A stretch of 62,033 bases of DNA from Chara braunii. Taxonomy: Eukaryota > Plantae > Charophyceae. Position numbers and translations under genes: made by a program. Below the pieces are notes generated by a model. That model ran no database searches, was not told the origin of the DNA, and worked only from the letters and a program-made list of their open reading frames with translations. Numbering within the stretch: the stretch's first letter is position 1; every line of letters starts with the position of its first letter. The DNA lies in the NCBI GenBank assembly GCA_003427395.1, contig BFEA01000029.1, positions 4,066,230 to 4,128,262 on the forward strand, given 5' to 3'. Below, piece by piece: positions 373 through 59,533 of this stretch.

Positions 373-3300
373 CTAACGACCGGCACTCGCCGTCGTCACC
401 CGTCTCGTCTCACTCCATGGTCGATCTGTGCGACCGAACAACATGGTGTCCAGCAACTCCTGCGCACGCTGGGTAGTGTCTCTCCGTCTACGGGCAACTG
501 ACCTCGGGGTGAGGCTGCCGCCCTCCCTCGGAGCTGCGCTCAAGGGTGACGAAGGGCCTGCGGCGCCTCCAGATGGCGCTGCGACCGAACCTCCAGAAGG
601 TAAGTCCCCTGCGACCCCGCCCGATGCCGCTGCAACGGAACCTCCAGAAGGTAAGCCCCCTGCAGCCCCGCCAGATGGCGCTGCGATGGAACACCCAGAA
701 GGTAAGCTGGGGCTGGCTGGCCCCCAAGATAAGTCCTGCATGTGAGGCAGCTTCCCCTCCCCTGGGACTGACCTCAAAACGCGCTGGTCGATCTCCGTCA
801 AATCCCTCCTGCCGTGGTCCTCCAACTCCTCAATGGTGATAAAACCAAAAGGGAGGCTGCCTCGAGGCGTAGCCACATGCCTAATCTCCGGCCTCGTCCG
901 TGACGGTGCAAAAGTAGGGACCGGAAGTATGCACGTGCCCCTGCCTACACGTCGCTCCTCGACCGGGCCACCGCCATGTGCAGGACGCCTAAAACCCTCC
1001 AAAAACGGTGCCTGATGTGGCACCACTGGCCCCACAGCATTGCGAACCACCAAAGTCTGTGGCATCTCCTGTCCGTCCGCGTCACGCCTGTCCACCTGTG
1101 CGGGGTCTCCCCCGCCAGACGTGGACATCGGATCGGCCGCGGACGGCACCCCCGACCCGCCAGCACCAACGGTCCCCGCTACGGCCCCGTCCCCCCCGGT
1201 GGTCGGCGCTATCCCGTCCGCCTATGCCGATGGGCGAATATCATCAATGCACACTGACTGCCCCGTCGGTATGTCCTCCAGACCCGGGGACATATGCACG
1301 GCATGCTCGACTGAACCCGCAGGCAGAGGCACGCCTGCGACCTCCTTCAATGTCTCCTCTGGCCTCCGCTCCACGGCAGGATGTTGCGCCGGCTCCGAAC
1401 GTGGCTCCTCTGTCGGTGCCAACCCGCTCTCGTGCGTCCCCTGCTGGACATCCACTCCCGTACTCGAAACCTCTGCCGAAGCTGCCTCCCGCTGCATCGT
1501 GTCGTGAACCTCTGCGGAGTATCAGTGTGGGCAGCTGGCCCCGCGTCAACAGATGCCGGCGTAAATGTCCCCAGCTGCCTCTGTCAATCCTCGGCCGCAA
1601 GACGGGCGAGCTCCTGCGTCCTGGGGTCCCTCTGTGCCATGAGGCACGCTCGACGACTATCAAGCCTTTCCAGCCTCTCTGCAGATGTCTCTCCAGGGGG
1701 TGTCCGGTCCTCATCCCCCTCTGCCCCCAACATCACCTCTGCGCGCATGGCAGGGGAGAAACTACTCGGGTCCGCAAAGATGATCTGTCCCAATAAGTCC
1801 TGCATACCCACACTGATTTCCCCATGGGACTCGCTCTCTCCTAGGGCCAGACCCACACTCTCTCCCAAGGGCATACCCATATCACCAAACTCACTGAAAC
1901 CGCCTCCGCCGCCCATCGGTATCCCCTCAACTGCCGCATCAGCCTCGGCACCGCCTCCACCTCCGGCCAGCGCACCACCATCTCCACCAACCAACCCCTG
2001 TCTGTCTCCGTCGTCACCGTGCACCGGCGCAGGACCGCCCTCCAATCTGTCCTCCAATCGCTGTCTCGGGCCCCTCACCAATCTCTGCAATCGATCTGCA
2101 ATGGGTGGCTGTCGATGAAGCTGCTCCGTCGAAGTGGGAAGAGCTGTGGATGATGTCGTGCCAGAGTGACCCAGAGGACGATGGCCAATCCCCAACTCTG
2201 TCCCCCTCGAAGGTGCAGACCCAAGATCTGTCTCCCGCTTAGCGGGAAGCGAAATGGTGGACGTAGGCCTCGGACGCCTTAAAGGGCTCCCATGACGACC
2301 CCCAGACTCCTCCAAATCAACCTGAATGAAAAGGTCATCTCCGCCACTTCATCTACGGACGTCCTCTCGGTCGCTCCACTCATCACGCTCATCCGCCGCA
2401 GGAGTGGTGCTAGCGGGGCCCGCCGGCTCGTCCTCGTCCTCGTGACCCTCGGAATCACTGTCGNNNNNNNNNNNNNNNNNNNNNNNNNNNNNNNNNNNNN
2501 NNNNNNNNNNNNNNNNNNNNNNNNNNNNNNNNNNNNNNNNNNNNNNNNNNNNNNNNNNNNNNNNNNNNNNNNNNNNNNNNNNNNNNNNNNNNNNNNNNNN
2601 NNNNNNNNNNNNNNNNNNNNNNNNNNNNNNNNNNNNNNNNNNNNNNNNNNNNNNNNNNNNNNNNNNNNNNNNNNNNNNNNNNNNNNNNNNNNNNNNNNNN
2701 NNNNNNNNGGCGAATCCCGATACCTCCCTCCACGTCTAACAACGACTCATCTAGAGTCCACGGCAGCGCGAACCCGCGACCTGCTCGCTGATGAGATAAA
2801 AGGAGGACGTTGGCTGAGATCTCAACCAACTTCGCGACCTTCTCGAACTCAAGCCGGTTACGCTTCTTTGTCTGTACACCCTCGTGGACGGCCCAATTCC
2901 TCTCCGCAGGAGAGGAGCACGTCCACATGTACATCACACGAAGAGCGATAACCTGCAACTGCGGGGCGCACTGCCCGTACCTGGACCACCAACACCCGGA
3001 CTCGTACGTCTCCGCATCGCCCCTTCACCTCTGTGCATCTCTGTCTCCGTCTCTCCCCCCCCAAGCAATCGTCCCCCTCAGTGTGTGGAAGTCGCGCAAC
3101 TGTGCACATGCAGTCCCGTAGTCGCGGCTCGCCACACTGAACCCTGTCTGCGACAAGATGTAAGTTTCCACCTCCCTCACCAAGCTCGCGTCGTAGTCGG
3201 TGACCACGCCCTCGAAGTACGACAAGTACTGCCGGTTGGGACAGAGGAGGTGAGCAGCGGCTTGTGCCGGCTCCAGCATGTGAGCGCATCGAGCCTACAC

Positions 3301-5004
3301 CCTCTGCACAATGTAGTGTGCAAGATTTGGCGGAAGTGCACAAACCTTCTCTGCCACCTGGCGGGCCAGATCCTGCGTCCACTCAACCACCCGCGACATG
3401 TGCAGCCCTCCGCGGTCCAACCTGCGCAGCAGGTCGTACACAGGCTCCATGATACGGAGCAAGATGCCCATGGAATCCCACCAACTGCCATGTCGCACCT
3501 GCCACCTGACCCACCTAGCCAAATGACGAACCGAATGGTCCCAAGGGACCATACCCCAACTATCCACCGTCCTCTCCAAAGCTGACCTCACTGCCAGCAA
3601 ACGCTCCACCATCGCAAACACGGATGCAAAACGTGTCTCGCAAGGATAGATGAGGCCCATCTGACTGCTCTCCCCCCGGAAGATATGGAGAGCGGCTCCG
3701 TGCTCCTTAATGAAGTGCACCACCGGTCTCCCCCTCACGATGATGTCCTTGGACCACGGGACCGAACAGCCAATGTCTGACAACATCTTGTTGCAGACAT
3801 GCACTGCGCATGGGAGCCACGTGATCCGTCGATGCTCCGGCCTCTGCTGGGGCCCCTGGAGCATGTTCGTCACGGCGACATACGCCGAGGCGGAGTCGGT
3901 GCAGATGGCATTCACCCACTTAGGGGGGAAGTCATCGAACACCTTGATCCACCGCGCCAACACATCAGGCGCCCGATCCCGCTCACCCTCCCTGTTCATC
4001 GTCCGGACGAGCATCACCCCACGCGACCCACCGGCAAGGAAGTTAACGATGGGTCTAGCATCGCGTGACTTCCTTCCGTCTGACATAATGGTGGCCCCTG
4101 TGACATAGAAAGGAGCCCTGACCTCCGCGAGATCAGCTCCCACATCGTCCGCCGTGTGGACAATGGTCTCTATGTCCGCGATCTCATTCTCTGAAGGCCA
4201 CAACACCTTCACTGGCCCCGGCAAGTCCCTGAAGTGTCGGACGACGTCCAACCATGGCTCGCTCCGGAAGACGTTGAACCGCAGGCGCTGACTGTACACA
4301 AACCGCAGCCACTTCTTTTTGAACTCCATCTGCCACTTTGAAGTGAACGACTCCGTGATCGTGTTTTGTCTCATCCTCTTCTGTGTTGCGGCTGCTGCCG
4401 TCGGTTTGTCCCCCTCCTCTCTCTCCTTCCTCTTCCCCGCAGACGCACTTGCCTCAGGCGTATCCGCACCTGCCCGTGCACGAACCGACACGTGCGCCGA
4501 CGCTAAGTACTGGCCCTGCTGCCCCCCCGGCTCGCTGACAACGCCCTTCCCTCACTCCCTCCTTGACGACCCCGCCCGTGCAACCTCCTCGTCGTCGTCG
4601 TCCACATTGATCTGCTCCCCCGCGTCCCTCATCTCTCCCTCCCCCCCCTCGTCCCGTTGCAGATCCACCGCAGGCGCCGCACCGTGAAGCTCCTCAAATC
4701 GTTGTATCCGCTCTAGGAACTTCTCGGACATCTTGTACTCACTGTTATAGTGGATGTCGACAAGTGCCTCGTCTGTCACTTCCGGACATCCCTTGCCCTG
4801 GCGGAAATGGCGCGCTGCCACAAACTGGTTGCCCTGGAACTCGTGGCCGCAAAAAACGCACTTCAACATGTGATTGCCGCGGAATCTCTCGCCGAGACTC
4901 TATCCCACGCGGATGTACTTGTACACGCAGCACTTCTTCTACACCTTCAGATTCTCTTCCTCCCCCCCATCCTCAAACACCCGAGATTGACTTCGCGGCA
5001 TCAT
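373..5004 (-). pseudogene. hAT transposase pseudogene (BED zinc finger, DUF659/RNase H-like DDE core, hATC dimerisation domain, long low-complexity C-terminus)
   Basis: BED-like LKCVFCGHEF..ARHF..KGC (4552-4869). Core GATIMSDG...AICTDSAS...WLPCAVH...YPCETRFAS (3295-4491). hATC-like CSSPAERNWAVHEGVQTKKRNRL (~2800-2958). In-frame stops separate the ORFs, and there is an N-gap at 2464-2708. Confidence 0.9.
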
Positions 5005-5239: not shown

Positions 5240-5341
5240 TATTGAACGCGCGTCCAACTAATTGAACGCGCGTTCGATAAATTGAACGCGCGTTCGATAA
5301 ATTGAACGCGCATTCAACAAATTGAACACGCGTTCAATTTT
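5240..5341. repeat. ~5 x 20-bp subterminal tandem repeat (ATTGAACGCGCGTTCRAYAA) of the hAT element
   Basis: Directly visible; the core GAACGCGCGTTC is palindromic and recurs at 6430-6525. Confidence 0.85.
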
Positions 5342-6226: not shown

Positions 6227-6230
<4 letters not shown>

Positions 6231-6554
6231 CGTGCGTTCACTCGTTCACATGAATGTTCGACGCGCAATGCACGACTGTGTCGCGTGCGAACGCTCCCCC
6301 CGCTATATATCGCCCCGCGACGAAACGCGGGCCTTTTTTTCGGGACCACAACCTCCCGGGAGGCTCCCCTGAACACCGCCGACACTCCAGCGCCCTCAGA
6401 GGCACCCCCCCAGCCCTGACATACCCCTGCGCAAACGCGTCAACTGCGTTCAGGGGCGTTCATTGAATGCGCGTTCACAGCGTTCAAAAACGGAACGCCA
6501 AACGTGCGTTCAATGAACGCGCGGTAACATAGAATATAATGAAGGGAATTCGGG

Positions 6555-7325
6555 CAGGCTGAGCATACCCTTAAGTTAGGGCGGTTCAGTCCTATGCTCG
6601 TGATGATGTAAAGGAGCAGAGAGTTGGTATAAATCTTCTTTTATGTTCCCTTTTAAACACAAGGTAGGATTGGATGTCTCCCTAAGTTGGATGGGTCTGA
6701 TAATCTGCCAAATAAGAGAGAAACCTATAAAGTTTGTGCAAGTGTATCAGTGGTTGTTCTCATATATTGTCGTTACGGAGGCTAGGCGTACCCTTAAGTT
6801 AGGGCGACTTAGTCATACGTCGTTTGTACTTTGTTCAAGCAGATCAGGTGTACCCGTAAGTTAGCGCGGCCTAGTCACAGTATCTTATGTACATAAACCT
6901 GTTCAAGCTAGCTAGGTGTACCCTTAAGTTAGGGCGACCTAGTGATATGCTCTTGTCGTTGATGTTATGTAGGTTGGACGTACCCTTAAGTTAAAGTGGT
7001 CTGACCATTCGTTGCTTGTACTTGTTTTAGGCAGGTTAGGCACACCTCTAAGTTGAGGCAGTCTAATCCTATGCCCTATGTAACCTTGTCTAGAGCTGAC
7101 TAGGCATACCCTTAAGTTAGGGCAGTCTAGTTTATGCTTTATGTCGTTAGTTAAGTAGAAGCCAGACATACCCTTAAGTTAGGGCGGTCTGGGCATATGT
7201 TTTATGACTAGAGTCGATGTGGTGTTGGGCATACCCTTAAGTTAGGGCAGTCTAGTTGTGTGTACCTTTATCTGTTTACTTAGGCAGGTTGGACATACCC
7301 TTAAGTTAGGGCCCTGTCTGATCGT
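6555..7325 (+). repeat. Array of 11 hairpins with invariant loop (RTA-CCCT-TAAGTT-AGGG-CR) and variable complementary outer stems, 62-68 nt period
   Basis: TAAGTT loops at 6572, 6683 (degenerate), 6795, 6857, 6925, 6987, 7049, 7113, 7175, 7238 and 7302. Confidence 0.9.
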
Positions 7326-7719
7326 ATGTCATAAGTGAGGGGGACGTAAGAAGGGAAAGAACGGAGTGATCTAACGAACTATTCGGCCTAAATCGATGTG
7401 GGACTGTGAGAGATGTATGTTTATTTATGTTTGTGGGCTCTCACTCTGGGGTGTCATTTCGATAGGTTAGCTGCTTAGATGCTCACCAAGTGTTGGAGCC
7501 ATAGGTAGATGAGATGGATGATGGGAGGGAGAGCTTGGGATAAAGATAGGACTGACCTTTCTTGAAGGTAAAATTGATGATAGCACACGATTCCATCTTT
7601 TGGAGGGGATCGTGTAAACTATCTTCAGTCCTAACTACAAAGCAAGTGTCAGAAGTTAGTCCCAAGTACAACTTTATTTTGTCTTTGTGTTTTCAGCTTT
7701 GTATAAATTTTGACAGCCT

Positions 7720-7930
7720 CCTGTTTCTACGGGAAGCGCGACTGAAATTTCTACATATCTGAGAGAGTTAGTTATTTTAGGACTTGTAGAAATTATGGAA
7801 AGGCATATTTCCTACGGGAAGCGCTGCCAAAATTTTGTAGAATTTGGAGAGTTAGATTATTTTTAACTAGGAGGAATCTGACAATCCATCCTGTTTAGGG
7901 GATATGCTGCCATAATTTCTTACATTTGTA
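7720..7930 (+). repeat. 3 copies of the (T)TTCTACGGGAAGCGCTGCCAAAATTT..GAGAGTTAG unit shared with element B
   Basis: Copies at ~7724, ~7808 and ~7893 (degenerate). Confidence 0.7.
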
Positions 7931-10041
7931 GATAAACATCAGAGGTTAGTTAGAAAGGTAGGATTATTTCTTGATCACTCAAACATGGCTTGGGTATTGG
8001 CCTGTGCTGCATTGCAGGTCACCTTTATTTAGATTGATTCAGGGCTTGACTATCTTCAAGCTGATCCTACAAGGATCACCCTCTGTTATCCTTAGATAAC
8101 AGGTCGGTTTCCGACTCAACTCTAATTCACTCTTGCCACTCAACCTAAAGGCTTTAGCCCTGTGGTTTGATTTGTTTTGTTGTGTTTTTGCCCAGACTTT
8201 AATTGGATGGCCATTTAATAAAGATGCTGAGTATTTTATTTTGAGACTCGCACAAAGAGTGAGGTTTGTATGGTTAAAGCGAGGGGTGCGAGCGCTGAGA
8301 ATGGTTGAAGTTGACCCCGTGTAGTGTGTGCTCTGTTGATGTGGATCTTTGATGTGATTGCAGGTATGTTTTGTGAGTTGAATCCAGACTCGATTTTGTC
8401 AATGATTATATATATACTTTTGAAAGAAGCCGCACTGTGATTGTGAGAGTGATCGTCTCCTATCTCATAACTTTTATATCATATTTTTTTGTGTCTGCAC
8501 GACCCATTGAGGTCGCACACAATGATTAAATAAGTTCTGCATCGAGAGAAAATAGAGAACCCTTCTTAGCTCTTGCTTTTTAGGATTAGCATGGTTGGAC
8601 GTTGTAGTCTGTGACAGCCGTCAAAGTCAAACCCCTTGATCTCTGGCCGCCACGACAGCTTGGAGTTGTCTACTCAACCCCTTTGCACAGAGTGCAGAAG
8701 AGGGTGTGGTCTTCAACCGCGCATGGCCGTTGTCCAGCGTCGAGAGATTAACCCTCAAGGCGCGTGTCAGCCGACACTTGAGTGTCGAACGAGACCCTCG
8801 AGATTAACGAGGATCGCTTGAGTATGGGTACTAGATAGTACGCCACCATTGCGACCGCTTGCGTATGCTTGCATTGCAAATCGATATGAGTTAGCCCTAC
8901 GTCCACACGGTTTTATACTAAGCCTCGCATGTAACGCTTATCCGATTTTTGCATCAGAAAGTTATGGGTTGGATGCTGAAGGGAATAAGAGTATTGTTGC
9001 GTTGTTGTGTTGTTGTGTTGTTGTATTGTTGTGGTGTAACGCGTCGATGCGTCCTAGTCGACCGGCGTTGAGTCGCGTTTGGGACCTCAGCCCCCTAGTG
9101 CGTCGATTCGCGTACGGGTTTGACCTTTGGGCGTTCGACCGCGCGTATCCCCTATGCTACAGCGAACGAGAAACGCCCTCGGCTGGGCCACCTCTGCAAT
9201 CGCATACGAAAAACTTTCACATGTGGTTCAGTAGCTCGGCAGGTATATGCTCACCTAAGGGATGGTGACAACTCCCACAGGTGGAGGTAAGCGGTGCCTT
9301 GCGTCACCTTGTCCTATCGTAGGGGCTCGCGAGAGGTACGGCTAGCGCACTCGGCCGGAGCGGCAAACGCTCTGCGTTACAAGTCCTGCCAAATCCTGCG
9401 TGATGCGGCGGAGAGGGTCCCCGTGCGGGACCGATGCGCTCGACATCAGATTCCGAGTTTTGCAAGGAGCGTTGTCAGTCCCTTGTTCGAAACCGAGATC
9501 CTACATGTGTTCCTCCTCCTTTTCCGCCAGGGAAAAAACGGTACGTCGATCCCGATGAAGTTCAAAGATACTTTTTGGATTAGATAGTTGTTGGGAAGGA
9601 ACCCTTTTATGTTTTTCCCGCTTTGTTCGTCACTCCATCTTTGGGACCATACATGAGATTTCACTTATGTTTGCGTCCCCACACTCAATTTTTCAAAAAT
9701 CCTTGACACACCCCATTTGACATTTTCCAAACCCGTTTCCACGCTTAGTCACTCCGATGGGAAAGATGTGTAGGGCGTGAGGTTTTAGCGTCACATGACA
9801 TCGATCTTTCTTGGCGATGAATCACTGATGCCAGGAGAACTTGGCCCTAAGGGGCAGACCTCGTTCGACACCAGATATAACATGTCGGACGACGGATGTT
9901 GAGACCTCAACATATACTTACATTAGTGAAGCTTGCCATTAAGGGTTAGGTCCCACGTTTGCTATATCTGGCTGAAAAAATGGTCAGGTTTCTATCGCGA
10001 TGGTCATGCTAGCTTAGCACGACCATAGCACCATTCAGGCC

Positions 10042-10400
10042 TGCAACATGCCTTTGGCTGCCCTGGCCTAGAGCCAAGGCTATTTGGCTATTTTGCCTAC
10101 TCTGCATGTGGAGTCAGGCCGTGGTTTGACCCCACATGCCATATGTTCATTCAGTCTAGTCATATCCTGCCCGTTACCACTATCGGTACCAGGCCATTTA
10201 TATCCAGTCCAATCCTTCTATTGGGGGTATCCCCCTGCTGCAGTTTGTTTTTCCTCATGTTTCATTTGCAAAGTTAAGAGTATGTGTGTGTTGAGTCTGC
10301 ATCGGAGTTGCATTATTCCCTCCAACTCCATCTCAATCTCCTCCTTCCTCACCTTTTCATCTTGATCCTAATGGACCGCCACCCCGGCGGATCCGTCACA
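10042..10400. repeat. Short LTR-like repeat (family C), ending CCGTCACA
   Basis: Clear similarity to 57695-58292 (GCTGCCCTGGCCTAGAGCC...CATTCAGTC...GGGGTAT...GTTGAGTCTGC...CCGTCACA). Confidence 0.7.
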
Positions 10401-11667
10401 CTGAAACAGAACGGGAACATGCCCCGCTCCCGGCCATCCTTCCCTATTTAACAACAAATCCCGATTGTTGGATTTTTCAGTTTTTTTGCGTCAGCGAACA
10501 AGAAAAAACAGGGGAAAAACCAGCTTAGCAGAAACAGTAGGGGAGAGCACCATGTGACAAAAAAGGAGAGTGATCACATTGTCAGGGGAAAAACCAACAT
10601 AGCAGCAGCAGTGGGGGAGAACACCACGTGGCAAACAAGGAGAGTGTGATCACAGCACATGCGCGCAAGCACCAAGACCAAGGCTGTCGCGCGGGTGTGC
10701 GCCCACGCCCCGCTGGCCCCACTGCCTCGTCCTGATGTCGACTCATCACATCCTGGAGCTGGAGAAAACGTAACCTTCTCTCCTCAATGAAAACTTGGAG
10801 GTAATAAACGAGTTCAAAACGATGAAGGCATAAATTACAAGGTTAAGTTAACGTCGTGGTAAGAACCTATTCTGAAGTCAAACGTGCTTACTTCTTTTAT
10901 ATCAATATTGAATTAAGTCGTTCGGCAGATATACTGAATACTCAATAAGTTATACACCACTTCAAATCTATCTTTTCGAGAAGGATAATCAAATCCACAA
11001 ATATCGATTAAAACTCGATATCTTGTGTTCGTATGATTTTTTTTTTTTTTAAGAATATTTGAAAAAAATTGTCTGGGTTGGTATATATACAAATTTTCGT
11101 TTTTGATATTTTATATTTGTTAATCCATTTTGGTAATGTAGCTATCAAAGATTTGAAAAACAATTGATTGTGCACAAACTACGCTCTCCTAGATAAATAT
11201 TATACAGATACGAGAAGTGCAACTATTAGGGTTTGAACTCCTATCTCCTCACTCCCACCTCAGGGCACCCTTTAGTTTGTTACTCCTCCCCCAGCTAGAG
11301 TACCCTCTCTGACTCCTCCACCTCCGACCCCGCACACCCCGCGAGTGGTTATCTTGCACATCACCGTGACGCAAATCCAGGCGGAGATACTTACCCTAAG
11401 ACAACCTCACCCTTTACAAACTGCCCACCCTTCTTCTTCTTTCACCCTCTCCTTTGCCGTCTTGCCTTACCACTCCATCACAGCAGCCCAAGGTCGTTGC
11501 CCAATTTACCCCCACCTCTACTGGTCTCCCCATCAGCGGCTACGCCCCGCAGTTCCCACACACTTGTACCCGTGCAAGGGCCCCGACTTTTATCGCCTCA
11601 GCCCTCTCCCCTCACCGTCATCACAGCGGACCACCCCTTGTGTACCTGTTGGATATACCCAACTACG

Positions 11668-14284: not shown

Positions 14285-14700
14285 GCTTGATGACCCATCC
14301 CATCTTCGTGTGTGACTGCCCTTAGGAGTTTTTTTTCTTAGGCTGCATTCACCCCCCCGAAGACCATCCCATTCTTAGTGGTTCAGCGACACGACATCAT
14401 CTTGTGACATATTGCTATCTTTTCCTTTCAGCGTTGAGGCAATTGTCTCTAGGACTTTAAAGTTGTAACCTGCTACATTTCATTTCGTGTTGTTAGCTAG
14501 GATGTGTATATCAGACATGTGCTTCCGCTATGATATTATGTAGCTTAGGCTGCATCGCATGAACTCCGCATGGAGCTTGCTCTGCATCCTAGATCTCTCA
14601 ACTTTATTGTTTGCAGAGTTCCGCTGCTTTTGCCGCAGTGTGTTTATGGCTCTCGCGATCCACTACAGGTCTGAGGATCGTGCAATGTGCTGTGACGCCC

Positions 14701-17142
14701 AACCTCACACCCAACAGGACTTCCTGATCGGAGTAGGATGGGGGTCTGGAAGTGCAAAAAGGGGGTGTGCCAAGGATTTTATGAAAGTGGGGGTGGAGTC
14801 CCAGGTCGGAACTTAGATCTCCTGTGGCGGGTTTTAGGGACAATGGTGCAAAAAGGGGCGCACTAATCGTATCCGGCGTTTCGGCCTTCGGGGATTTGGC
14901 TATGGCCTCGGCCAGTTGCGTCGCCGTGGTCGGTCCCTTGTCTGGTGGATTGGTGGGACATCGTGGCTGTCGCGTTGCTATCAGTGCCGCTCGTAACAAG
15001 CTTCAGAGTCCGACGGGGCGGGTCGTAGGCGGAGGTTGTGCAATCGCTGCTCAGCTTCAGCTCGAGTTCGTCGGGTATATCCCGAGGCCCGGCGTGCTTG
15101 GTACTGCTGGCAGTCCTCGCACAGTGGGCTGAGCCAATAGCGAGCTATGGAATTCCACGATACCACTGTGAGCTGGTGATAGGGAAGGAGGAGATGGAAA
15201 GGTGGGAAGATGGTGGTAATAACGACGAAGCCTTGGCATATGTAGTATTGAGTACTATCCATATCTAGGCCCCTAGGGTGGTGGGTTATAGCCCAGTGGA
15301 AATCCCCTTCGCACAAACGGTCATTCTCTGTCAGACAATGGAATTTCGGGTTTCTCAAGTTTCCCCGCCGTCTAAGTTGTTCGCCTTCCCAGTACTCGCG
15401 ATACTTCGGATCCCTAAGGTTTCACAATCAGTAATCCAAAACGGACTGCCTTCGGTCGTATCTGGCTAATGAATGCAATTTCCCGCATCCTTACGATAAA
15501 TTCGAGGTCGGCTCATGCAGACGCACGTGTATGTTGTGACTCAGTTTCTTCGAGCTCACAGTTGTACGCGCGCGTGCGCATGTGTGAAAGCGGATCGATC
15601 CGGCATCCGTCCCGAATGCAACTATCCTACTCGTGCTATGTTGGGTGAAATACAGACTTCACATTCACATTCATGCCATTCATGCGATAACAGTAGGGAA
15701 GGGAAAGGACGATCAACACCTCACAACATTCCCGGCGATCTGACGACGATCAGAGATTAACAATTGAATCTAACATCCATATAGGGTGCTTTCCGTTAGA
15801 TATGAGAGTATTGTTCATACAGAGGGATAAGTAACAGGATTTGAATTAGACAGGCAAAACAAGATTGGAAATCTGAGAAGATCACTAGCGCAAAAAGAGT
15901 TCACATCCATTCATACATACATACAAGGCAGAGGCGACAAAGGAAACTCGAGACGATTTACAAGGAAAGATCCAAAATGGCCGCGATAAAAATCGATCAT
16001 AGCGGGAGGCAAAATTGTACACACAAGCAAAATAAAAAACTTCATCCCGCACCCACAACTGCCCCCTCTCTCTCTCTCTCCCTCTCTCTCTCTCTCCACT
16101 TTACACCCCCAATACCGGCAGTCCGTCGGCACGTATCAATACAGAGTTGTCACCCCACTTGGCTTGAGCATGCAAGTCAGGTTCACCCGTGAGTCACAGT
16201 CCGTCACGGCCCCACACGTTAACCCCGCAAACCCGACACCAGCTCGTCGGATCGCCCAACTCTCGCACTCACTTACCTTCCAAACTTGCTCGTTAGCCGA
16301 CCCTCACTGATCGCGCTAACCTCGAAATTCTTAGACAGCAAACTAATCGCGCTTGCGGAATTTATAGTGTGGACGCTTGTGCGAAGTCTACGGGATTATA
16401 CCCAAGTGGTGAGAGGAAGTGCCTACGTCTGCATGTCTGGGCCGCGGCGCGAGGGACAAAGTCACTCTCCGCGCATCGGTCCGGGCATGCAGGCATATGA
16501 ACTAATCAGGTAGGGGAAGAAGGTGTGCATGCACGGGCGAGCACAAGGCGAGAAGAGGGAAGAACATGAAGGACGTCAAGAATAAGAAGATTACAGTTGC
16601 AATCACACCCGCCAAAGCTTTTACAGTTACGTGCAAGATTAAGGCACAAAAAAAAGTCAGAACCCAGATCTTGTCGCGGCAAGGCGTGTGTAAGTAGGAA
16701 GCGCCTCGCAACAAAATTCAGAAGGTGCCTAAATTCCTAGCTTAAGTCCTAATTGCAAAGGAAAATTCCGAATAAAAAAACGATTCCGAGAGCCCGTGGG
16801 GCTCGACATCAGTTGAAATTTGAAAAGAAAACGACATTCCCGCGCGCTGATCGCGCCAAAATTCCGAGTGCTCCCAGACTCCCAGTATCACAAGAAAGAA
16901 GTTATGGTACAATCATTTCTTGCGCTCGCTAAGGCGCAGTTACCCATCCATTGGCATGGAATGTTCCCGACACCGATCCGACAACTTCCAGCGGGAAACA
17001 AAAAAGAAACAAGGGCATCCTTGCAATTTGCCCGACCAGCCCGTCTTCCCACAGCTCACCCCCTTCGACCCGTCGTTTTTCCCAAGCAGCTTCAAGTTCG
17101 CGTAGAAAGTCGCGCGATTATAAAAAATAGTTCGTCACATAT
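14701..17142 (-). repeat. 3' LTR of the large gypsy element
   Basis: Colinear, highly similar direct repeat of 55108-57689, from AACCTCAC.. to ..GTTCGTCACATAT. Confidence 0.93.
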
Positions 17143-24629: not shown

Positions 24630-25404
24630 TCACTCATGTTGGACCATCAATAAAATGTCGAATGCAATTCTATGCCTCATATACGGGATGTTATCTCGCG
24701 AGAAATCGAATGGTGGAAAGTGACCTTTCGCTAGCAAAGATGCAAAACCTAACATAAGAACACCACAACTACAACCATCATGTTGGACGGGCACCCCATC
24801 AAGTGATGTCTCGAAAGATATCGTAAGATCGTCCACATGATATGTTTCATGAAGATTTAGACGTTTGAACTTCATTCTAAAAAACGCGGCTAATACTTCA
24901 AGCGGTGCGAGGCGGTTGCCGCGAGGAAGAGAGTCTACAAGCTGGAATCGACACTTGCAACCGTCTATTCTAACACATGCCAAAGCCCAATGGTTTCCAA
25001 AATTCAAAGAGATAAGTACGAAGTTAAAATCAAAAATATTTTTTTCCCTGACCCACTTCATTCCCTCACAGTAAGCAATTTCTCTGGACGTTGCGGATGT
25101 CAATCTGACATAGAAAAAAGAATCTAAAATATACACAGATGGAATGTCCTTCGAACACTCGTCTCTAATCTCCTCTAAACATCAAACGCTCTTTGGCATT
25201 ATCGTTGTCGATTTGGATGGCTAGCAGATACAAATTCACGGCTTCGTCGTTCAACCATCCTTCCGCTTCAATGATGACCATGATGTCTTTCTTTTCCACC
25301 TTCCAGTCACCCTTGTAAACAACAATGTCATATTCTTCATTATCTTCACTGGTGCTCACAACCCTTTTAACATACTGCATCTCGACCTCAGTGAGGCGTT
25401 GCAT
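24630..25404 (-). pseudogene. Ulp1/Peptidase C48 SUMO-protease-like domain (one in-frame stop at ~25165)
   Basis: GWLNDEAVNLYL, ILDSFFY, NHWAL, DSL and QHDGCSCGV, i.e. the H-D-Q-C catalytic residues; probably the last exon of the large minus-strand cargo gene. Confidence 0.9.
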
Positions 25405-32601: not shown

Positions 32602-34889
32602 TTCTGCAGAGTCGAGCGGAGTCTAGTAACAGCCGAGCTGTTATGCCAAAACAATCAACAACGCAAAGCAGTAAATGCGAAACTCCTTCAAGGCGGACAA
32701 ACATACATTTGCACCGCCCACTCTTAGAACACAACTTTTGAATGACATTTTAGAGGATGAGGTTATCGTTTTCGACACGACAACGCCGAGAGACGAGCAA
32801 TAGCCGAGACCTTGTAATTGTGGCCAACACGACAAGACTACTAATAGTCGAGACCACGTTATCATGTCCGACACGACAACCTGGACGGATATCAGTAATA
32901 ATTCAGCTGTCGTTCAGAAACACAGTCGACAGACAAATCCCCTTCGATCAACACTGCACTAGATAGCATTGTCGTGTCCGACGCGACAACCCGGCACAGC
33001 GACTGGTGGCAAAGACCCACCCCCTGCGATACGACCATGCCGAAGAGCGGGTTAATGAGTGGGCTATCGAGGTGTCGGGCGCAATCGGTCCGGCACCGCA
33101 CGGGGGCAGCGCGGGACCCTCCCGGCCGCGTCACGCAGGACCTGGTTTTTACAACCCTCCGTCGCAGATATACATGGAGCTTCCACAAGCCGCTCCGGCC
33201 GGGTGCGCCAGCCATACCTCTCGCGAGCCCCTACGACAGGATAGGGCCTACGCGAGGCACGACTTACCTACACCTTACGGGAGCTGTCACCTCCCTTCGG
33301 TGGACGTATCCCCGCCGAGCTACCAGTCCACAGTACGAAAGCTAATCAGCTGCAATCGCAGAGGTGGACCAGCCGAGGGCGTTTCTCGTTCGCTGTAGCA
33401 TAGGGGGTACGCGCGATAATACGCCTCTATCGGACCCGCACGCGAACCAACATCTTGGGGGGGCTGAGGTCCCAAGCGCGACTCATCGTCGGTCGACTAG
33501 GACGCTTCCCACACACCACGCGCACTCCTCGTTACGAACACAAAGACATAAAAACATGTACGCGCACACGTACGAAACGACACAACACAAACAACGCGAC
33601 AACGGTCCTAGCCCCTCGGTAGCCGTCCCATAACTTTCGAACGCAAAAATCGAATAGCCGTCGCGCGCGGGACTTAGGATAAAAACGCGCGGACGCAGGG
33701 CCTACTCATGTCGACTCGCAATGCAAACGTANGCAAGCAGTCGCAATGATGGCGTACTATGTAGTGCCCATAATCAAGCGGTCCCTCGTGGNTCCGAGTA
33801 CCGCTTATGACACTCAAGTGTCAGACTTGAAGTGTCGTGANGGCCTAACCCTTCACGACATTGCACGGCTGAAGNAAATAGTCGTGCAGCCGCCGCTACG
33901 CCTTAGGCTCTTGACCTGAGCGTCTCGGTAGGCAAATCAAATAGACTCTGNGCGAGGGAAAACCCCTCCCCAGCAGAGCCTAGGGCTTGGGATGTCCTGG
34001 ACAAGGACCTCGAATCCCAGCCCAGGACTAACGTCCGACTAAGAAAATCCTCAAAAGCAAGAATAAAAAATAGAAGTAGGGGCCTCCCATAAGTTCTTCA
34101 GTCCCAACTTCTGGATGGGGCTTTAATATGGGGATTCTTCAACCGATGCAAACACTTATCCCAAGCATGCCCATTTATACATATATAAGGATCAAATATG
34201 TGACGATCGCTCCTCATGGTTTCGCTGGGGTTTTCTCACAATAATACGCATATGTGTGATCGCAGGCAACCAAATCCAGAATCTGATTCACAGCACATAC
34301 CTGCCATCATATCAACAAAACAAATCAACAGCCCACACACTACACGAAGTCAACCCCAACCACCTTCGACGCTCATACCCCTTGCTTTAGCCATGCAAGC
34401 CCCAAACCTCCTGTCCAACCAACCTTAATTAAAATACTCAGTACCTTTGTTAAATGGTCATTCAATAAAAGTCTGGGTGAAACCTTAATAAAACAACGAA
34501 AATCACCTGGGCTAAAGCCTTTTAGGTTGAGTGTAGAGGGAGAGTTGAAATTGAGTCGTAAACCGACGGATCGGCAACCGACCTGTTATCAGTGATAACA
34601 GNTGATGATCCTCNAGGGATCAAGCTGGATCTAACCCTGAACTTNGATCAAATGATCNAAAAGACCTGTAACACATGGCAGGCCAATCCCCAAGCTAAGA
34701 TCATAAGTGTATGGAGAATACAGCTTCATAATACATCCTCAATTAAAATTTTCTTATAAACTTAGCCTCAGTCTCCTTTTTAAGTCGGTGCTTAAGTCAA
34801 AGGTANGCCAACTGCAGAACCCCCCCCCTATTCTGGGTGGNTNGCCTGAATTTTCACCTGTNAAAATATAACCTATCTCCTCTACACTA

Positions 34890-35590
34890 AGAAAAATTTC
34901 GGCAGCGCTTCCCGTAGGAAAAGTGCCTTTTCAGAATTTATATAAGCCCAGATATGAAAAATATAAATAATTTCTAACTCTGGAAAGCCAAAATTTGTCT
35001 AACTCCCTGAGTTAGTAGAAATTTGGGCAGCACTCCCTTTAGAAAAGGAGACTTTCCAGATTTATACTAAGCCAGATACAAAGCAGGAGATAATCTCTAA
35101 CTCCTGGAAAGTCAAATTATGTCTAACTCTCTGAATTAGTAGAAATTTTGGCAGCACTCCCTTTAGAAAAGGAGNGGCAGCACTCCCTTTAGAAAAGGAG
35201 ACTTTCCAGATTTATACTAAGTCAGATATGAACTCGAACAACAGCTCGGGCTCAACTTTTTAGGCTAAATTTTAACTAACTCCTTAATATTTTGCAGAAA
35301 TTTTCGGCAGCACTCCCTCTAGAAAAGTGCTATTCCAAAATTTGTACAAGGCTAAGTTCAGAATTTCGAGAATAACTTTGGTTTCTCAAAGTCCAATTTT
35401 GTCTAACCCCCTGAATTAGTAAAAATTTGGGCAGCACTCCCTCTAGAAAAGGAGATTTTCCAGATTTATACTAATCCATATATGGAAAAGACAAGCTGAA
35501 CTCTGACAAGTCAAAGTTGACTAACTTCTTGATTTGTAGAAATTTCGGCAGCGCTTCCCGTAGGAAAAGTAGCTTGCCAAGATTTATACA
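34890..35590 (-). repeat. 6-7 copies of a ~120-155 nt unit (AAATTTNGGCAGCRCTYCC..AGAAAA on +), shared with element A
   Basis: Copies at ~34895, 35020, 35143, 35176 (partial), 35299, 35423 and 35541. Confidence 0.8.
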
Positions 35591-35879
35591 AGGCCAAGAA
35601 TAAGNAACGATNTTCNGAAAATGCAAGAATTAACCTAAGTAAAAAAAGTTGTTGCAGAAAAATGCACGAATTGACACTAACTCCTATAGCTCTAGCACGT
35701 GGCGAGCAACTAAAGCAACTACNTATAGTAATGAACTTAAGCAAACTAGCCATCCCATCCAGTCACATGCAAACCAACCCACCAATGTAAGTACTCTCAC
35801 CACCCCAAATTCATTCCATATAAATAGTTCGTGAATCTTCAAGTTCTTGAATCCTTATACCCATCTTATATAAGACATA

Positions 35880-36580
35880 GAGATGGATCATTCACCATGG
35901 AAACAATGCCCAGCCTGTCTTTATGATATACACGAACAGGTTTCACAACTACTTCTCTCTTCCTTTGGGCAGATGACTAGGCCATTCGCCATGGAAACAA
36001 TGCCTAGTCGCCCTGAGCTGTTTAATATCCAAAAATTTAGTACTTCNCTGACTTTGTTTTCAAAAAAAAAAAAAAAAAGGAAAAGCACATACGGGCAGGG
36101 GACTGAACCATCCACAGTAGGAACAATGTTCAGCTTGCCCAACTATTTCCATTTATACTTTGTATTTTCCTTTTTCTCTTCTTAATGATATGGCTTAACG
36201 CTGGACCATTCACAGTAGAAACAATGTCCAGCTGCCAGTTCACATGCAAATATATATAAAATACTTTCCTTTATACTTAGCTTAAATTATGTGCGTGGTT
36301 TTTAGGCTAAACCATTCACCATGGAAACAATGCTTAGCCTTAGACCAAAAATCCTCCCTCGGAATAAACAAGAACTCAAACTCCTTCAATCAGGCAAACC
36401 CCCAGAGTTAACTAGAGCAACCAGGCCATTCACCATGGAAACAATGCCTGGTTCCCCANAAAACAACTAAATAAACACAGCAACCAGGCCATTCACCTTG
36501 GAAACAATGCCTGGTCCTTCAGAAAACAGTCCAAATAAACACAGTCCTAAGCCATTCACAGTAGAAACAATGCTCAGGCT
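35880..36580 (-). repeat. Array of 8 hairpins with conserved core CATTGTTTC(CATG/TACT)GTGAATGG and variable complementary outer stems
   Basis: + strand cores CATTCAC....GAAACAATG at 35889, 35983, 36109, 36207, 36313, 36427, 36490 and 36553. Confidence 0.88.
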
Positions 36581-39451
36581 TTTGGTTGACCCGGTCAAAC
36601 GCATGCAGTCTACCTTCCTCCCACCTTCCCCCATTTCATACCTTAGTCTGCTTTCAGTCACAAATAAACTGAAACTTATGCTTCACTCTCACACATTCTT
36701 TCCATTCAATCTGATTAAGTCCTGAAGAGAAACCAAAAACCATAGGGACAACACATGCATACCGCAATCATACTACAGGGAGATAGGCAAACATGGGTAG
36801 TGGTAGGTTTTATACAGATAAAGATGATTTACCTGAAGGTTCCCTGCCTCCAGAACTCCTCCTGAGTTTCGGCAGAGCTCCCGCAATCGGTGGGTGGACT
36901 CCCCACAGAGTCTTGATGCGGACCTACGGGTTGCAATCCCCGCCCGCCGCCTTCCTCTTGTAACCAGACCAGACTTAGAGGGAGAAGGGCAGATAGAGAC
37001 AGTTTTTAGACTCTCAGATCTAAGAAGGGTGCTCTCAGACTCGCAGGAGAGGGCCTTGTTGCCTCGATGCGCCTGAGGGCCCCACAATGGCGACCAATGT
37101 GACAGCTTGGTCAATCCANCAGTTAATCGTCAAAGTTCACTTTCTGCCGACCTCCATAATCACAACACTAACCTTCTTCGCCACTATCCCACTGAGCTGC
37201 AACAGCAGCCTCCTTTCCCCGAGTCCAATTNCTCCCNCCCNCCAAGTCTATCCGCTGTAGTACCGCAGGCTGCGACAGTCGGCCACAANCGCTGCGGTAT
37301 GCAATAGTGCGTAGCAATCAATCATCAGGTTNCAGCAGTAGGCGACTTCCAGCAGGTGGTGACAGCCTGTGAACTTTTGAGAGTCGCGGTTGTGCACAGT
37401 TGCCAGCAACAGTTCGCATGTAGTTCGTAGCACCATCAGACCGCAACAACAGTCNGGACACAATCCGCAATAACTTGTGATCTGTGCCTGGCCAAATAGT
37501 AACTGCAGTTGTGCACAGCGGTAGTTAACAATAGCAGCAGTCCCCAACAGCCTCGGCGGTTTGTACACAATACGTAGCAGCAGTCCGTGCACAGTCAACG
37601 GACGCACCCGCAGTCTGTACACAGTGCACAGCAATTAGAAGCAACCAACAACAGTCTACCACAGGATGCCAGTAGTATGTAGCAGTATAAGGCAGTGCGC
37701 AGCCGTAGGCAGCAGTTGCAATACCGCACCCGCAAACTTAGCTTGTCAATGAGCTCCTCCCTGTGCTGCAGTAAGGGTGCCTCGTCGGTAACTGCTTTGC
37801 CCCCCCCCCCTTTCCAAGTTGGCTTTCAGTGCACAGACTACTGCTACACCTGCGTATTGGCCAAGTATCCTGTTTGGCTCCCGTAGCAGCCACACGGAGC
37901 GCATGAAGATGCTGACTTAACAACCATTGTCAAGACCGGGTACGTGCACCCACTGCTTCAAGCTTCAAACAATGGGGCGGGCGGCCCACCTGCACACTGG
38001 CCAGCACCAGAGCGCAGACGATTCCCACACACGCCATCACCTACAGGCCACACAGACATCCCAATCGAAGTCACATTCAGCTCCCTGACCGGCAGCCTCT
38101 CCCTCATCCCAGTATACTCCTGTCCGTACCTGGGCCACTATTCCACAAGTAAGTGCTCGCCCCCTCCCCATCATATATGGCTGCAGAACGATCTTCCTGC
38201 CACAGTTCGCTGCCAATGCGAACATACCAAATTGGGGTGGGCCGCCCACTACACTGCGGGAGTATGCGTTGCCTCTTAAATAGGGGGGGAAAAAACGGTC
38301 TCCTACGATTATAAGATATGTAGAAACAAAAATAAAATATATAAAAAAAATAGAAAAAAAAGTAATAAGATTTTCGTTCGAACGTGGGAATATACACCGC
38401 TGCCCTTCAGGTACGTACTTCGTTCGTTCTTCTCTACCCTGGTTCGAACCCCCCCCTTTTCCTTTTTCGTTACCTCCTATCAACAAGATGAGCAAGATTG
38501 GGAATGAATCTTTCGCTAAAGCGTGGCCAGGTGCAGCCGCCCGCTGCCAACCCCGTCGCGTTCGCGCAACCTTTCTCCCTTCCAGCTCCTTACCTGCTAA
38601 CCTACCGCTAAAACCGATGCCAGATCCCGATTTGCCCGGGGGTAAAACCCCGGAATCAAATCTCTTCCTTCCCGTTTTCGTCAAGGAACGGGAAGGATCG
38701 ACATTTTCCCACTCCTTCTCATTTGCTTCTCCCCATAGCCACGGCGCACTGTTTTCCTTATCTACCTCCACCTCCACTAACTCTCCGTTAGATCTAACCT
38801 GGGATTCGGATTCGCCCCTCACAGAAAACCTTCACCTATTTACCTCCTCCCATCCGATTCCGCCGTCTTTCGGTTAGTTGTCTCGACTCTCCGCTTCTCT
38901 CTCACCTCTCTACTCCATAGCCACTGCGCAGGCTTTTCTCTACTAATCTCCCTCTACGCTAATCTAGCACTAAAACTAACCTCATTAACGTACTCGCCCT
39001 ATATAAGAACACCTATATAGGCTTTTTCCCCGCCCAAATCCGTGAAGTATCGCGTTCACCATCGTTTTCTTCTCTGCGCCCGAATTTCTCTTCCGCCATC
39101 CCATTTCCCGCATGCACCTGGCGCAAATACCCAGCAAAGTTCGTGTCATTATTTTCCCTTCCTCTGTTCCTTCTTTCTACACCTACTACCTCATCTCCCT
39201 GGCTCTCCGCTCAACCGTGCGCTACCTCAGGTCTCAGGAGCATTGTCTTCTTCCGACGGCCTTCTTTCCCGTAATCACCCTCACCGTCGAAAGTACCCGG
39301 CGCAATATCGCGCCCGGGTTCATTCAACTCCCTCTGCCTTGCTTTCGGCCGTCCCGTTCGCTGCGCTATCACTCCATCTCTCAGCCGGGTTGACGTCACC
39401 CCGGCGCTTTAAACGCGGTACGGTCCGACAGTCAGTCAAATGCCAAAGTGC

Positions 39452-39561
39452 AAAATGCGCCTGGCCGTCAGGCTTCCTCCGCTATATCCGTACCGTCCTT
39501 GCGCAGGGGCCATGCTAATCTTCTGTGCATCGCTCCAATTTTGACGGATGTCCCGTAGGAC
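39452..39561 (-). ncRNA. U6 snRNA-like variant, ~110 nt, ending in TTTT
   Basis: Minus strand reads GTCCTACGGGACATCCGTCAAAATTGGAGCGATGCACAGAAGATTAGCATGGCCCCTGCGCAAGGA.., compared with plant U6 recalled as GTCCCTTCGGGGACATCCGATAAAATTGGAACGATACAGAGAAGATTAGCATGGCCCCTGCGCAAGGA. The 3' third is diverged. Confidence 0.9.
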
Positions 39562-39682
39562 CCGACCGGAGTAGCGCTCCCACGGCAACCCCGTAGCCAC
39601 ATCCGCTGCGGTGCCACTTTAACAGATGCCCCCGGCCGCGGTAACNCCCCGCCGTAGAGCGTTGCCCGACCACGCCTACCGG

Positions 39683-39750
39683 CCTAAGGGAAACTTCGAA
39701 ATGAGCCAGTTACTAGACGGTTCAATTAGTCTTTCGCCCCTATACTTAAG
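39683..39750 (-). rRNA. Isolated ~68-nt diverged fragment of LSU (25S/28S) rRNA, LR5-primer region; not an rDNA gene
   Basis: Minus strand reads CTTAAGTATAGGGGCGAAAGACTAATTGAACCGTCTAGTAACTGGCTCATTTCGAAGTTTCCCTTAGG, compared with the consensus recalled as CTTGGGTATAGGGGCGAAAGACTAATCGAACCATCTAGTAGCTGGTTCCCTCCGAAGTTTCCCTCAGG; about 10 mismatches and no gaps. Confidence 0.88.
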
Positions 39751-39859
39751 CCCCTACGGGTGGACTGCATGGTAGTGCTACAGCCACCCCTGCCGTAAAT
39801 ACCCCAGGCTTACCGCGCACACTCGGGCCGCCGTGCCCATCGCGCCCGCGGCCAATTTT

Positions 39860-39930
39860 CCGATCATCCGGGTTTGAACTCGGGTCTGTATTTCAACAGT
39901 TCATGGGTGTACCCACTGAGCTAAAGACTC
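39860..39930 (-). promoter_or_regulatory. tRNA-derived head with Pol III A box and B box (not a functional cloverleaf)
   Basis: TAGCTCAGTGG (A box), then a CTGT-TGAAAT-ACAG hairpin, then GAGTTCAAACC (B box) at tRNA-like spacing. Acceptor and D stems do not close. Confidence 0.7.
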
Positions 39931-41929
39931 TTGGGTGCCTGCTATATCTACGGTACCACGCTTCGGGCCAAAACGGGACCGCGCATAACAATAAAGGAAA
40001 AACAAATAGATAAATAAATAAAAACCAAAAAAATAAAAAATAAATAAAGACATAGAATATCATAAATAAGGGCCCCTATGCACGGTACGGGGACTGCTAA
40101 AGCCCCGTCGGTCCCGTGGATCGGCCCCGCCGCTACGTCTGTCAACAAAAAACCAGAGGGTGATAGCCCGTCGACCCTCAACCCCCTCGGTTTTCGCCGC
40201 ACGCTCCGCTGCAGTTGTTGCGCCGACGCCTGCCGACTTCGACCCCAGAACCTTCGTATCAATAGTCCGATGCCGTAACCTATAGCACTAGGCCCAAANC
40301 TNGGTTTAGCTCTGGCGGACGTATAAATAGGCGGACCCTACGCGACGCGCTACGCTACCGAAACGCCTCCAGAAGTCACATCGCTGTCGACGTCGCCCTC
40401 CGCACGTACACATAGGTCACAGGCAGGCCCAACAATCAGCGAGACATAATCTTTTCAATCCCTATTTAATCAGAAGAAAAAAATTAAGGCCGGCGATCGA
40501 GCCGACCCTTCAATCATCAACAATTAAGCAGATCACGCGCGCCTCAAAAATCCGCGCGCCCACACACTCTCTATTCTAGTCCACCATCCGGTCAGCATAA
40601 ATCACNGACGCAGCCGCGCCTAGCGCGGTGTACCTAAATTTTAAATCAAACTATTTTCTGTCACTTGCAAAAACCAGGGCGGATACCCTTGTAAGGGTAT
40701 TCGCGCCGACAGCGGCGAGCAGGGAATGAGTCCTGTGAATTGAAGAAGCGGACGAGTACTTTTCTTCAGTGGCTGGCGGCATCGAGCCACAGAGTCTTCA
40801 ACACGCAGGACACATCCCCTGCCCGCCGCGACAACTTCGGGCAGTGGCGTCGAGGAACCCTCAGTGATTGTCGTGTCGAACACGAGAACGGGCACTCATT
40901 TCCGGAACGGTCGTGTGAACACGGCGATGATACTCTCGGTTTCGACGCGACAGTCCCTGAGTGCGGGTCGGTGCCTCCATTGGAGGTTGTCAATGACGAC
41001 TCGTGATGGAAGGGCGGGTATTTCTCTCTTTCAGAGAGTGCACATTTTTTTCACATAGAAAGAAGCTATTGTGCAAGATGGTCGTGTTGAACACGACGAT
41101 GTATGTGGAGGTTGTTGTCCTGTTCGACACGACCTATCCCGGCATAAGGAAAATCCCTCGACTTCACAGTGCAAGATGTAGAAGCATGCACCATGCATAA
41201 ACCCATCTGCGTCACAGTCCACAATAATAGAATGGGCGGAGATCAGAGAGCGAAACATTTAACATTTGCGCCTGTGTCAAAAATCCACAATATACTTTCG
41301 TCAATTTCAGGTCTGCAGCACAAAAGCGGAAGGAGCTGTTTATGATACCGAAAAGACACATAAGGCACCTGATAATGTTGTTGTTGTTGCGATACATTCA
41401 AGAAATGCTTCGAAGGCACGCATTACTGTAAACGTCCGACGCCAAAGACTGATAACGAAGCGGAAGAAATGCTTCGCATGTATCACTTTAAGAAATGCTT
41501 CGCATGTATTACTGTAAACGCAGGACAACGAAGCGAAAGAAACTCTTCGCATGTACGAGCACAAATACACAGGAAAGAAATGCTTTGAAGGCATGCATCA
41601 CTATAAATGTTCGACGACCAGGCAACCGATCGCTTGAAACGGCCTGTTGTTGTAGTTCAAGGTTACTAAAAGAAAGGGGAAAAGATTGTTTCCGATGCCA
41701 GAGACTGACAACGAAGCGGAAGAAAGTCAGAGGCAGGTCCAACAACGGAACTCGTAGAATGACCGAAAGGCGGGGTGCCATCTGTGATCCCAAAGAAGCG
41801 ACGCTCAACTTACAAACGCCCAACGTGCAGAACATCTACCGATGATGGCGAGCTGTTGCAATCATGCACTCATTAGCTGCTCGAATAGGACATCTGAACG
41901 TCAGACACAATGGTTCCTCGACAGAAGCA

Positions 41930-55095: not shown

Positions 55096-55108
55096 GGCTC
55101 CGATACCA
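55096..55108 (-). promoter_or_regulatory. Primer-binding site complementary to tRNA-iMet
   Basis: TGGTATCGGAGCC on the minus strand (canonical TGGTATCAGAGCC), abutting or overlapping the LTR end by 1 nt. Confidence 0.9.
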
Positions 55109-59437: not shown

Positions 59438-59439
59438 AC

Positions 59440-59533
<94 letters not shown>
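59438..59533. repeat. (CA)n microsatellite
   Basis: Directly visible. Confidence 0.97.

Follow-up and report, generated by a model that had tools for sequence, protein, structure and literature searches.

In Tat/Ogre retrotransposons, the 3' untranslated regions (UTRs) are known to carry hypervariable tandem repeats (PMC7004042). Here we describe an array of 11 hairpins in a 62,033-nt stretch of the genome of the alga Chara braunii (contig BFEA01000029.1, positions 4,066,230 to 4,128,262 of the forward strand in assembly GCA_003427395.1; hereafter the window, meaning this stretch at its full length). As far as that paper describes them, Tat/Ogre repeats resemble this array, array A, in being short tandem arrays with family-variable monomers in the untranslated part of a plant-lineage retroelement. 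They differ in that pairing and loop are selected in array A, whereas a term search of the main text of PMC7004042 found no mention of hairpin, palindrome or secondary structure. Array A presents one invariant loop, UAAGUU, on stems that vary in sequence and keep their pairing, and it forms the 5' part of a module of low GC content that is free of open reading frames (ORFs; module A). We favor, with a probability of about one half, the reading that array A is a multivalent RNA docking array on the sense-strand RNA of a mobile element.

Some better-characterized RNAs share parts of this design. The Xist A-repeat has about eight hairpin-forming conserved cores with U-rich variable linkers and serves as a multivalent protein platform; unlike Xist, in which the core is conserved, array A has stems that covary between units, belongs to an algal mobile element and has no known sequence similarity to the A-repeat. 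The MS2 and PP7 operators are small hairpins with a 5' purine bulge, a 4-bp upper stem and a fixed loop that is read by protein, and in engineered MS2/PP7 arrays stems and linkers are varied and loops kept, avoiding recombination, which is the pattern of array A. This likeness is an analogy only, because array A comes without a phage or coat-protein gene, has another loop and has a bulge geometry that is predicted from a pair possible in 8 of 10 units. The retroviral trans-activation response element (TAR), psi stem-loops and constitutive transport element are likewise bulged hairpins with specific loops that recruit proteins to retroelement RNA, and multimerized transport elements act synergistically. 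Such retroviral signals consist of one to four hairpins, in contrast to a regular array of 8-17. An earlier note on this DNA, made from its letters and without database searches, had called the array superficially CRISPR-like, and palindromic repeats at even intervals, about 35 nt long and separated by about 27 nt, do recall clustered regularly interspaced short palindromic repeats (CRISPR). We rejected this comparison. The genome is eukaryotic, the stems vary by unit (outer stems are 58-60% identical), what is conserved is the loop and not the full repeat, and the linkers are interrelated, diverged repeats and not unique spacers, with no matches elsewhere in the window; there are no cas genes, and the neighbors are retrotransposon and hAT genes. 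Literature searches on Chara retrotransposons and hairpins, on stem-loop tandem repeats in long terminal repeat (LTR) elements and on hairpin arrays turned up no such array. Within the searches made, a selected array of fixed-loop hairpins thus seems to be undescribed, although retrotransposon-internal tandem repeats themselves are known.

Searching the window with the core CCCTTAAGTTAGGG gave nine matches within three mismatches on the + strand at 6568-7311, and one single three-mismatch match elsewhere in the 62 kb. The tenth clear unit has a compensated inner stem, CCTC/GAGG, which we located at 7045-7058, and an eleventh is decayed and retains the loop, so that TAAGTT is invariant in 11/11 units. 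The ten clear units were used to build a model, R1, from which all bit scores were obtained. The row of 11 hairpins with its invariant loop, the single compensated inner stem and the spacing of nine consecutive units at 62-68 nt had all been proposed in the earlier note and hold up on measurement, the spacings being 62, 68, 62, 62, 64, 62, 63 and 64 nt. Every outer stem listed there is also present, but these helices are 7-8 bp long rather than 6. The description of the linkers as dissimilar was mistaken: they are T-rich and consist of diverged, related repeat sequence (identity 0.60 versus 0.52 +/- 0.015 in shuffles). Tandem Repeats Finder assigns the array a period of 68, and whole units are 67-69% identical to one another. 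With head-to-tail units in an ORF-free module that has a homologous copy in the window (module B), array A is a transposon-internal tandem repeat.

When folded singly, each unit forms two stems: a lower one of 7-8 bp and an inner one of 4 bp (CCCU/AGGG), which is capped by the UAAGUU hexaloop. Between the two stems lies an internal loop, with RUA on its 5' side and CR on its 3' side. RNAalifold recovered a structure of 7 + 4 bp from the alignment without being supplied with it. Standard pairs fill 90.2% of cells across the 11 units, as against 17-55% when the 3' partner columns are slid. Change on both sides was seen in 8 of 12 pairs, a number reached by 3 of 500 shuffles, and the 14 double-change cells were matched by none of 500; pair counts on the ten clear units gave the same picture. 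Mean pairwise identity is 1.00 in the loop, 0.77-0.86 in the inner stem, 0.58-0.60 in the outer stems and 0.33-0.55 in the linkers. A constant single-stranded loop on stems that are free in sequence and kept in pairing is the usual signature of a protein-recognized RNA hairpin, and a peak of conservation at the loop is what recognition of the loop, with the stem as scaffold, would leave behind. A succession of ten such hairpins suggests a multivalent platform. Within the internal loop, a U-R pair that is possible in 8/10 units would leave a bulged purine and an A.C mismatch; the loop probably has this form, the variation that backs it being one-sided only. As a whole the array folds only modestly better than its shuffles do, with z = -2.1 for the + strand and z = -1.2 for the minus strand. 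Folds of single sequences had hinted at a third helix tier at the base (GCAG... / ...YAUGC), which we discarded because the consensus fold does not bear it out, and the + strand of module A contains no AACTTA that could partner the loop by complementarity.

Pairing of this kind could also be a legacy of descent. If a palindromic unit of about 63 nt had been amplified as a neutral transposon-internal satellite, then ancestry, transition bias, G+T composition or template-switch repair might account for what is paired. The units are indeed related by duplication, this copy shows decay, column-preserving shuffles of array A already pair at 84%, and the tandem repeats of Tat/Ogre 3' UTRs offer a hypervariable precedent (PMC7004042). 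Because the units are related by duplication, we simulated neutral evolution on their own neighbor-joining tree up to the observed stem divergence. In the lower stem, neutral pairing reached 66%, 74% and 79% at kappa 2, 6 and 20, compared with 92% observed (P <= 0.005; at kappa 20, P = 0.005). A neutral satellite also leaves unexplained why the loop is 100% conserved while linkers are 33-55% identical, and why the two-tier design persists across three array types with diverged apices (below). Templated correction of quasi-palindromes, for its part, would yield perfect Watson-Crick arms and not arms with 17% G.U. We therefore regard a purely neutral origin as quite unlikely.

Further evidence came from sibling copies of the module. 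In oligo-dT RNA-seq runs of the same species, covering three samples, region 6230-9600 drew 1422 reads in one sample and 31 and 45 in the others. This excess of about 30-fold could reflect condition- or tissue-specific de-repression, or DNA carry-over. Most of the 1422 reads are 90-95% alike and therefore derive from sibling copies. The best-supported 40 of 311 variants sample this diversity without covering it in full; seven of them lie in stem columns of array A, and all seven (7/7) leave a standard pair. In hairpin 7, 7047 T>C occurs together with 7056 A>G, converting U-A to C-G. In hairpin 3, 6785 G>A turns G.U into A-U, and 6807 A>G repairs a mismatch (C.A to C-G); a second mismatch is repaired in hairpin 9 by 7193 G>T (G.G to G.U), and in hairpin 5 6937 A>G exchanges U-A for U.G. 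The other sibling variants lie in linkers, in the flank just 5' of the array or in the internal loop. Since compensatory changes occur, neutral simulation falls short and sibling variants keep or restore pairs, selection acts on a folded single strand: pairing and loop letters are under purifying selection, and stem and linker sequence drifts. The earlier proposal of selection on folded structure beyond simple satellite expansion is thus borne out, also by the recurrence of the same design in two other arrays.

The first of these is in module B, which sits in the internal region of a 43-kb Ty3/gypsy element, upstream of its protease, reverse transcriptase (RT) and integrase and on its sense strand. 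The array of module B occupies the slot matching array A, and its eight hairpins have the lower-stem length and 19-nt apical length of those in A; the apex differs (AUUGUUUCCAUGGUGAAUG). In this array 94.3% of cells are paired, with 16 double-change cells (0/500 shuffles), and model R1 matches five of its hairpins weakly at full length. Array C, with 13 hairpins, was found in an unrelated Chara locus, L035, where it forms two blocks about 1.3 kb apart with 90.1% of cells paired and 20 double-change cells. It shares flanking motifs with array A, UAGGCAG before the hairpin and CAUAUG after it, and between B and C a small upper stem covaries, UU/AA versus CC/GG. The loops are UAAGUU in A and CCAUGGU and CCAUGCU in the other two arrays. 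As the two-tier design recurs in A, B and C with different apices, the three form a superfamily of arrays with family-specific apices. Array C was a chance find, which suggests that such arrays are common in the Chara genome. L035 was one of three sibling loci of the neighboring Ty3/gypsy RT (among them also L036 and L037) that we took from the same assembly, and these three loci, chosen by RT relatedness, contain no A-type arrays; the RT element of the window is an unrelated nested insertion (10042-58292) and not the coding part of module A.

The + strand folds better in 9/10 A units and the sense strand in 8/8 B units, and the hairpin-sense strand of B is the coding strand of the surrounding retroelement. 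Array A has 23 G-U against 6 A-C pairs on the + strand (p = 0.002 against 1:1), with the same direction in B (6:2) and C (10:5). Together these are weak hints that the folded strand is the sense strand. One sample covered array A at a depth of about 8-19, and the other two had almost none; across 6230-9600, depth was highest in the 3' domain (8603-9393). The first mate lay on the + strand in 64% of depth (64:36; library protocol not known), which is unlike plain genomic contamination, yet far from the one-strand ratio of a stranded library. The element family is likely transcribed. On expression of the + strand, which the earlier note had put forward as a check, the family reads of the one oligo-dT run lie in both orientations and do not identify the transcribed strand.

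Cleavage of a transcript into small or unit-length RNAs, whether like microRNAs (miRNAs) or small interfering RNAs, as products of about 62 nt or as a decoy for the silencing machinery, would suit hairpins regularly spaced on one strand, some of which can extend their helix into the flanks. Transposon-derived hairpin clusters yield small RNAs in plants. We consider such a precursor very unlikely here. Two-tier stems of 12 bp are too short for Dicer-like processing, RNAalifold shows no conserved basal extension, and the loop is the most and the arms the least conserved part, the opposite of miRNA genes. A search of 6400-9500 against Rfam gave no match even at E <= 5. The earlier suggestion of processing into ~62-nt unit RNAs gained no backing either, with no clustered read ends over array A in poly(A) RNA-seq, a library type that misses small RNAs. 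Two specific classes were rejected as well: a miRNA or pre-miRNA cluster, which needs a stem of about 21 bp or more and a conserved mature arm (here 12 bp, with the loop at 100% and arms at 58-86%), and C/D-box small nucleolar RNAs, for which RUGAUGA appears in one linker only and Rfam gives no match.

Several observations weigh against the docking reading. This copy is partly decayed, with units 2, 4 and 6 affected. Double-change counts taken alone are marginal in the tree-aware simulation (P = 0.02-0.12). The excess of G-U pairs, which the earlier note had used as a strand argument, is real as a count but is not significant once the G+T-rich composition is allowed for (p = 0.085 with array composition, 0.27 with linker composition). 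The reads come almost entirely from one sample, from sibling copies and in both orientations, and may also be compatible with partial DNA carry-over or antisense transcription. Finally, the window holds no second direct-orientation copy of A or B, no target-site duplication at their presumed ends and no tRNA-type primer-binding site after A, so that the LTR status of A and B cannot be shown within it.

Loss of the strand asymmetry on correction for composition, together with ambiguous RNA evidence, leaves room for a role at the DNA level. The units could act as cruciforms or single-stranded DNA hairpins, in reverse-transcription intermediates or replication, or the conserved 14-19 bp core could be an enhancer-like duplex site for a protein; tandem enhancer repeats are common in LTR U3 regions, and the core holds TTAGGG / CCCTAA-like motifs of telomere or telobox type. 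A telobox or telomere repeat as such was rejected, TTAGGG being confined to the type A core and absent from B and C. Duplex binding leaves the complementarity of the variable flanks unexplained, and the most conserved letters, TAAGTT, are a non-palindromic loop, which resembles an inverted-repeat half-site less than any other part does. In 23/132 cells there is a G.T wobble, a pair poorly tolerated in the arms of a B-DNA cruciform, and the cores of B and C are quite different while the fold is the same. A DNA-level role thus appears unlikely.

Multivalent protein binding or packaging, both of which the constant loop on variable stems plausibly fits best, remains our preferred function for the docking array. 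We infer three points: the hairpins fold as RNA, they do so on the sense strand, and their ligand is a protein. Array A would then be an old, diverged tandem repeat in a non-coding terminal module of a Chara braunii mobile element, in which each unit of about 63 nt gives a two-tier hairpin of about 35 nt and ten or so copies of one loop are presented to a loop-specific RNA-binding protein. Candidate ligands are the Gag/nucleocapsid of the element itself, which would serve packaging, or a host factor for export, stability or transcription. Our first guess would be Gag-mediated packaging, with export, stability or a TAR-like role as alternatives. That different element families use different loops may point to family-specific partners. 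The divergence of the units would fit an element copied by reverse transcriptase. Reverse transcription readily deletes identical direct repeats, and divergence of stems and linkers is expected of a repeat that must survive it. More tentatively, we propose that Chara mobile elements carry an undescribed kind of RNA device that acts in cis, namely MS2-like arrays that occur naturally and have 8-17 hairpins. Their loops could serve as address labels for co-evolving element or host RNA-binding proteins in family-selective packaging, export or protection, and their stems may be kept different to survive template switching by reverse transcriptase.

The limits of module A were set on the left by the start of sibling similarity and low-GC composition, and on the right, at ...CGACA, by the point beyond which sibling contigs and module B diverge. 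The module starts near TGAAG and ends in CGACA, as does B. Beyond 9443-9445 the sibling contigs are continued by two or more other sequences, as would suit the end of an element. Module A lies outside both Ty3/gypsy elements of the window, and its right flank (9448-10041) resumes at 58298-62033, without a recognizable protein domain. Between these two pieces lies the outer Ty3/gypsy element. Its LTRs are 10042-10401 and 57688-58043, and a tandem duplicate extends the second as far as 58292; compared with L036 and L037, about 3.3 kb of pol is absent between 14277 and 14284. The inner element sits where the 3' LTR of the outer one begins, has a tRNA-iMet-like primer-binding sequence, TGGTATCGGAGCC, beside its 5' LTR, and is flanked by TGTGC / TATGC, which look like a decayed target-site duplication. 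Its protease, RT and integrase are preceded by a Ulp1 (Peptidase_C48) ORF at 24630-25136. Positions of all features are given in Table 1.

Table 1. Hairpin arrays, modules and enclosing elements (positions in the window unless another sequence is named; bit scores from model R1)
Feature	Position	Strand	Remarks
Module A (array A = 5' part)	~6531..9447	+	2.9 kb, low GC, ORF-free
Candidate TATA box, TATAAT	6535..6540	+	22 nt upstream of hairpin 1; read from sequence
Array A, 11 two-tier hairpins (10 clear, 1 decayed)	6556..7326	+	core search, folding, model R1
Hairpin 1	6556..6594	+	outer stem CTGAGC/GTTCAG; 56.9 bits; -17.1 kcal/mol
Hairpin 2	6667..6705	+	decayed: TAAGTT loop retained, inner stem lost; 13.8 bits
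Hairpin 3	6779..6817	+	55.4 bits
Hairpin 4	6841..6879	+	inner stem damaged (CCCG/AGCG); 46 bits
Hairpin 5	6909..6947	+	CTAGGT/ACCTAG; 54.7 bits
Hairpin 6	6971..7009	+	inner stem damaged (AAAG); 46.9 bits
Hairpin 7	7033..7071	+	inner stem compensated, CCTC/GAGG at 7045-7058; 53.4 bits
Hairpin 8	7097..7135	+	51.2 bits
Hairpin 9	7159..7197	+	CCAGAC/GTCTGG; 54.7 bits
Hairpin 10	7222..7260	+	50.7 bits
Hairpin 11	7286..7326	+	2-nt insertion in 3' internal loop; 50.4 bits
Part of A homologous to B	7696..9421 (A); 35594-33113 (B)	+ (A); minus (B)	downstream two-thirds of A; 70-92% identity, in blocks
Outer Ty3/gypsy element	10042-58292	+	~360-bp LTRs; perfect 5-bp target-site duplication AGGCC
Inner 43-kb Ty3/gypsy element	14699-57689	minus	LTRs 14699-17142 and 55106-57689, 87-89% identical
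Module B	33012..40766	minus	limits as in the earlier note
Module B array, 8 hairpins	35880..36581	minus	slot matching array A; 8-bp variable lower stem, 19-nt apical part
Array C, 13 hairpins	L035 (BFEA01000432.1) 4295-1913	minus	apex AUGUCCUCCRUGYUAGGUG

The window is eukaryotic. Its contents include a U6 small nuclear RNA (snRNA), assembly gaps and many microsatellites, and the best 19 database matches of its integrase ORF and best 15 of its RT ORF are Chara braunii proteins throughout. Across the whole window the sole Rfam match at gathering level is that U6, at 39462-39561, and a tRNA search of the window found none. Scanning metagenomes for ACCCTTAAGTTAGGGC yielded 34 contigs with one match each, which is chance level, and no arrays (0). 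A 76-aa ORF that runs through array A gave no candidates when searched against a protein database as DNA index.

Some features of module B and of the region upstream of module A stand apart from these questions. The self-complementary CCAUGG in four of the eight B loops might in theory let them pair as kissing dimers, as a retroviral dimerization site does; CUACUG or CCAAGG is found in the remaining B hairpins. The sequence TGTTTC...GTGAA in B resembles a ParB parS site, a candidate we rejected because it is not palindromic and its spacing differs. The U6 snRNA match in module B (minus strand, 56.2 bits) has GCACAGA in place of ACAGAGA, and by eye no complementarity was seen between this U6-like gene and the hairpin loops. 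Upstream of module A, a 20-bp tandem repeat with the palindrome TTGAACGCGCGTTCAA (4.8 copies, 5241-5337) is followed, right before the module, by an inverted repeat of 20 nt with the same motif (6456-6520). Both are found in GC-rich DNA beside a hAT-type DUF659 ORF (3295-4491, minus strand) and may be transposase-binding subterminal repeats.

This window contributes a partly decayed A-type copy, a pair of modules with different arrays in one slot and a selection test that takes the tree of units into account, along with a warning that the strand argument from G-U pairs has less force than it appears to have. Whatever the function, the clean covariation defines a well-defined structured nucleic-acid motif without an Rfam family, and some retrotransposon-internal tandem repeats are structured, selected elements rather than neutral satellites. 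If the docking reading is true, these arrays would be the equivalent in nature of engineered MS2/PP7 arrays and would give retroelements a new means of labeling RNA as their own, and they would provide a set of orthogonal loop-protein pairs that could possibly serve as RNA tags. The 1.8-Gb Chara genome is filled with giant elements that are largely non-coding, and the arrays would also offer a handle on their recognition, packaging or silencing.

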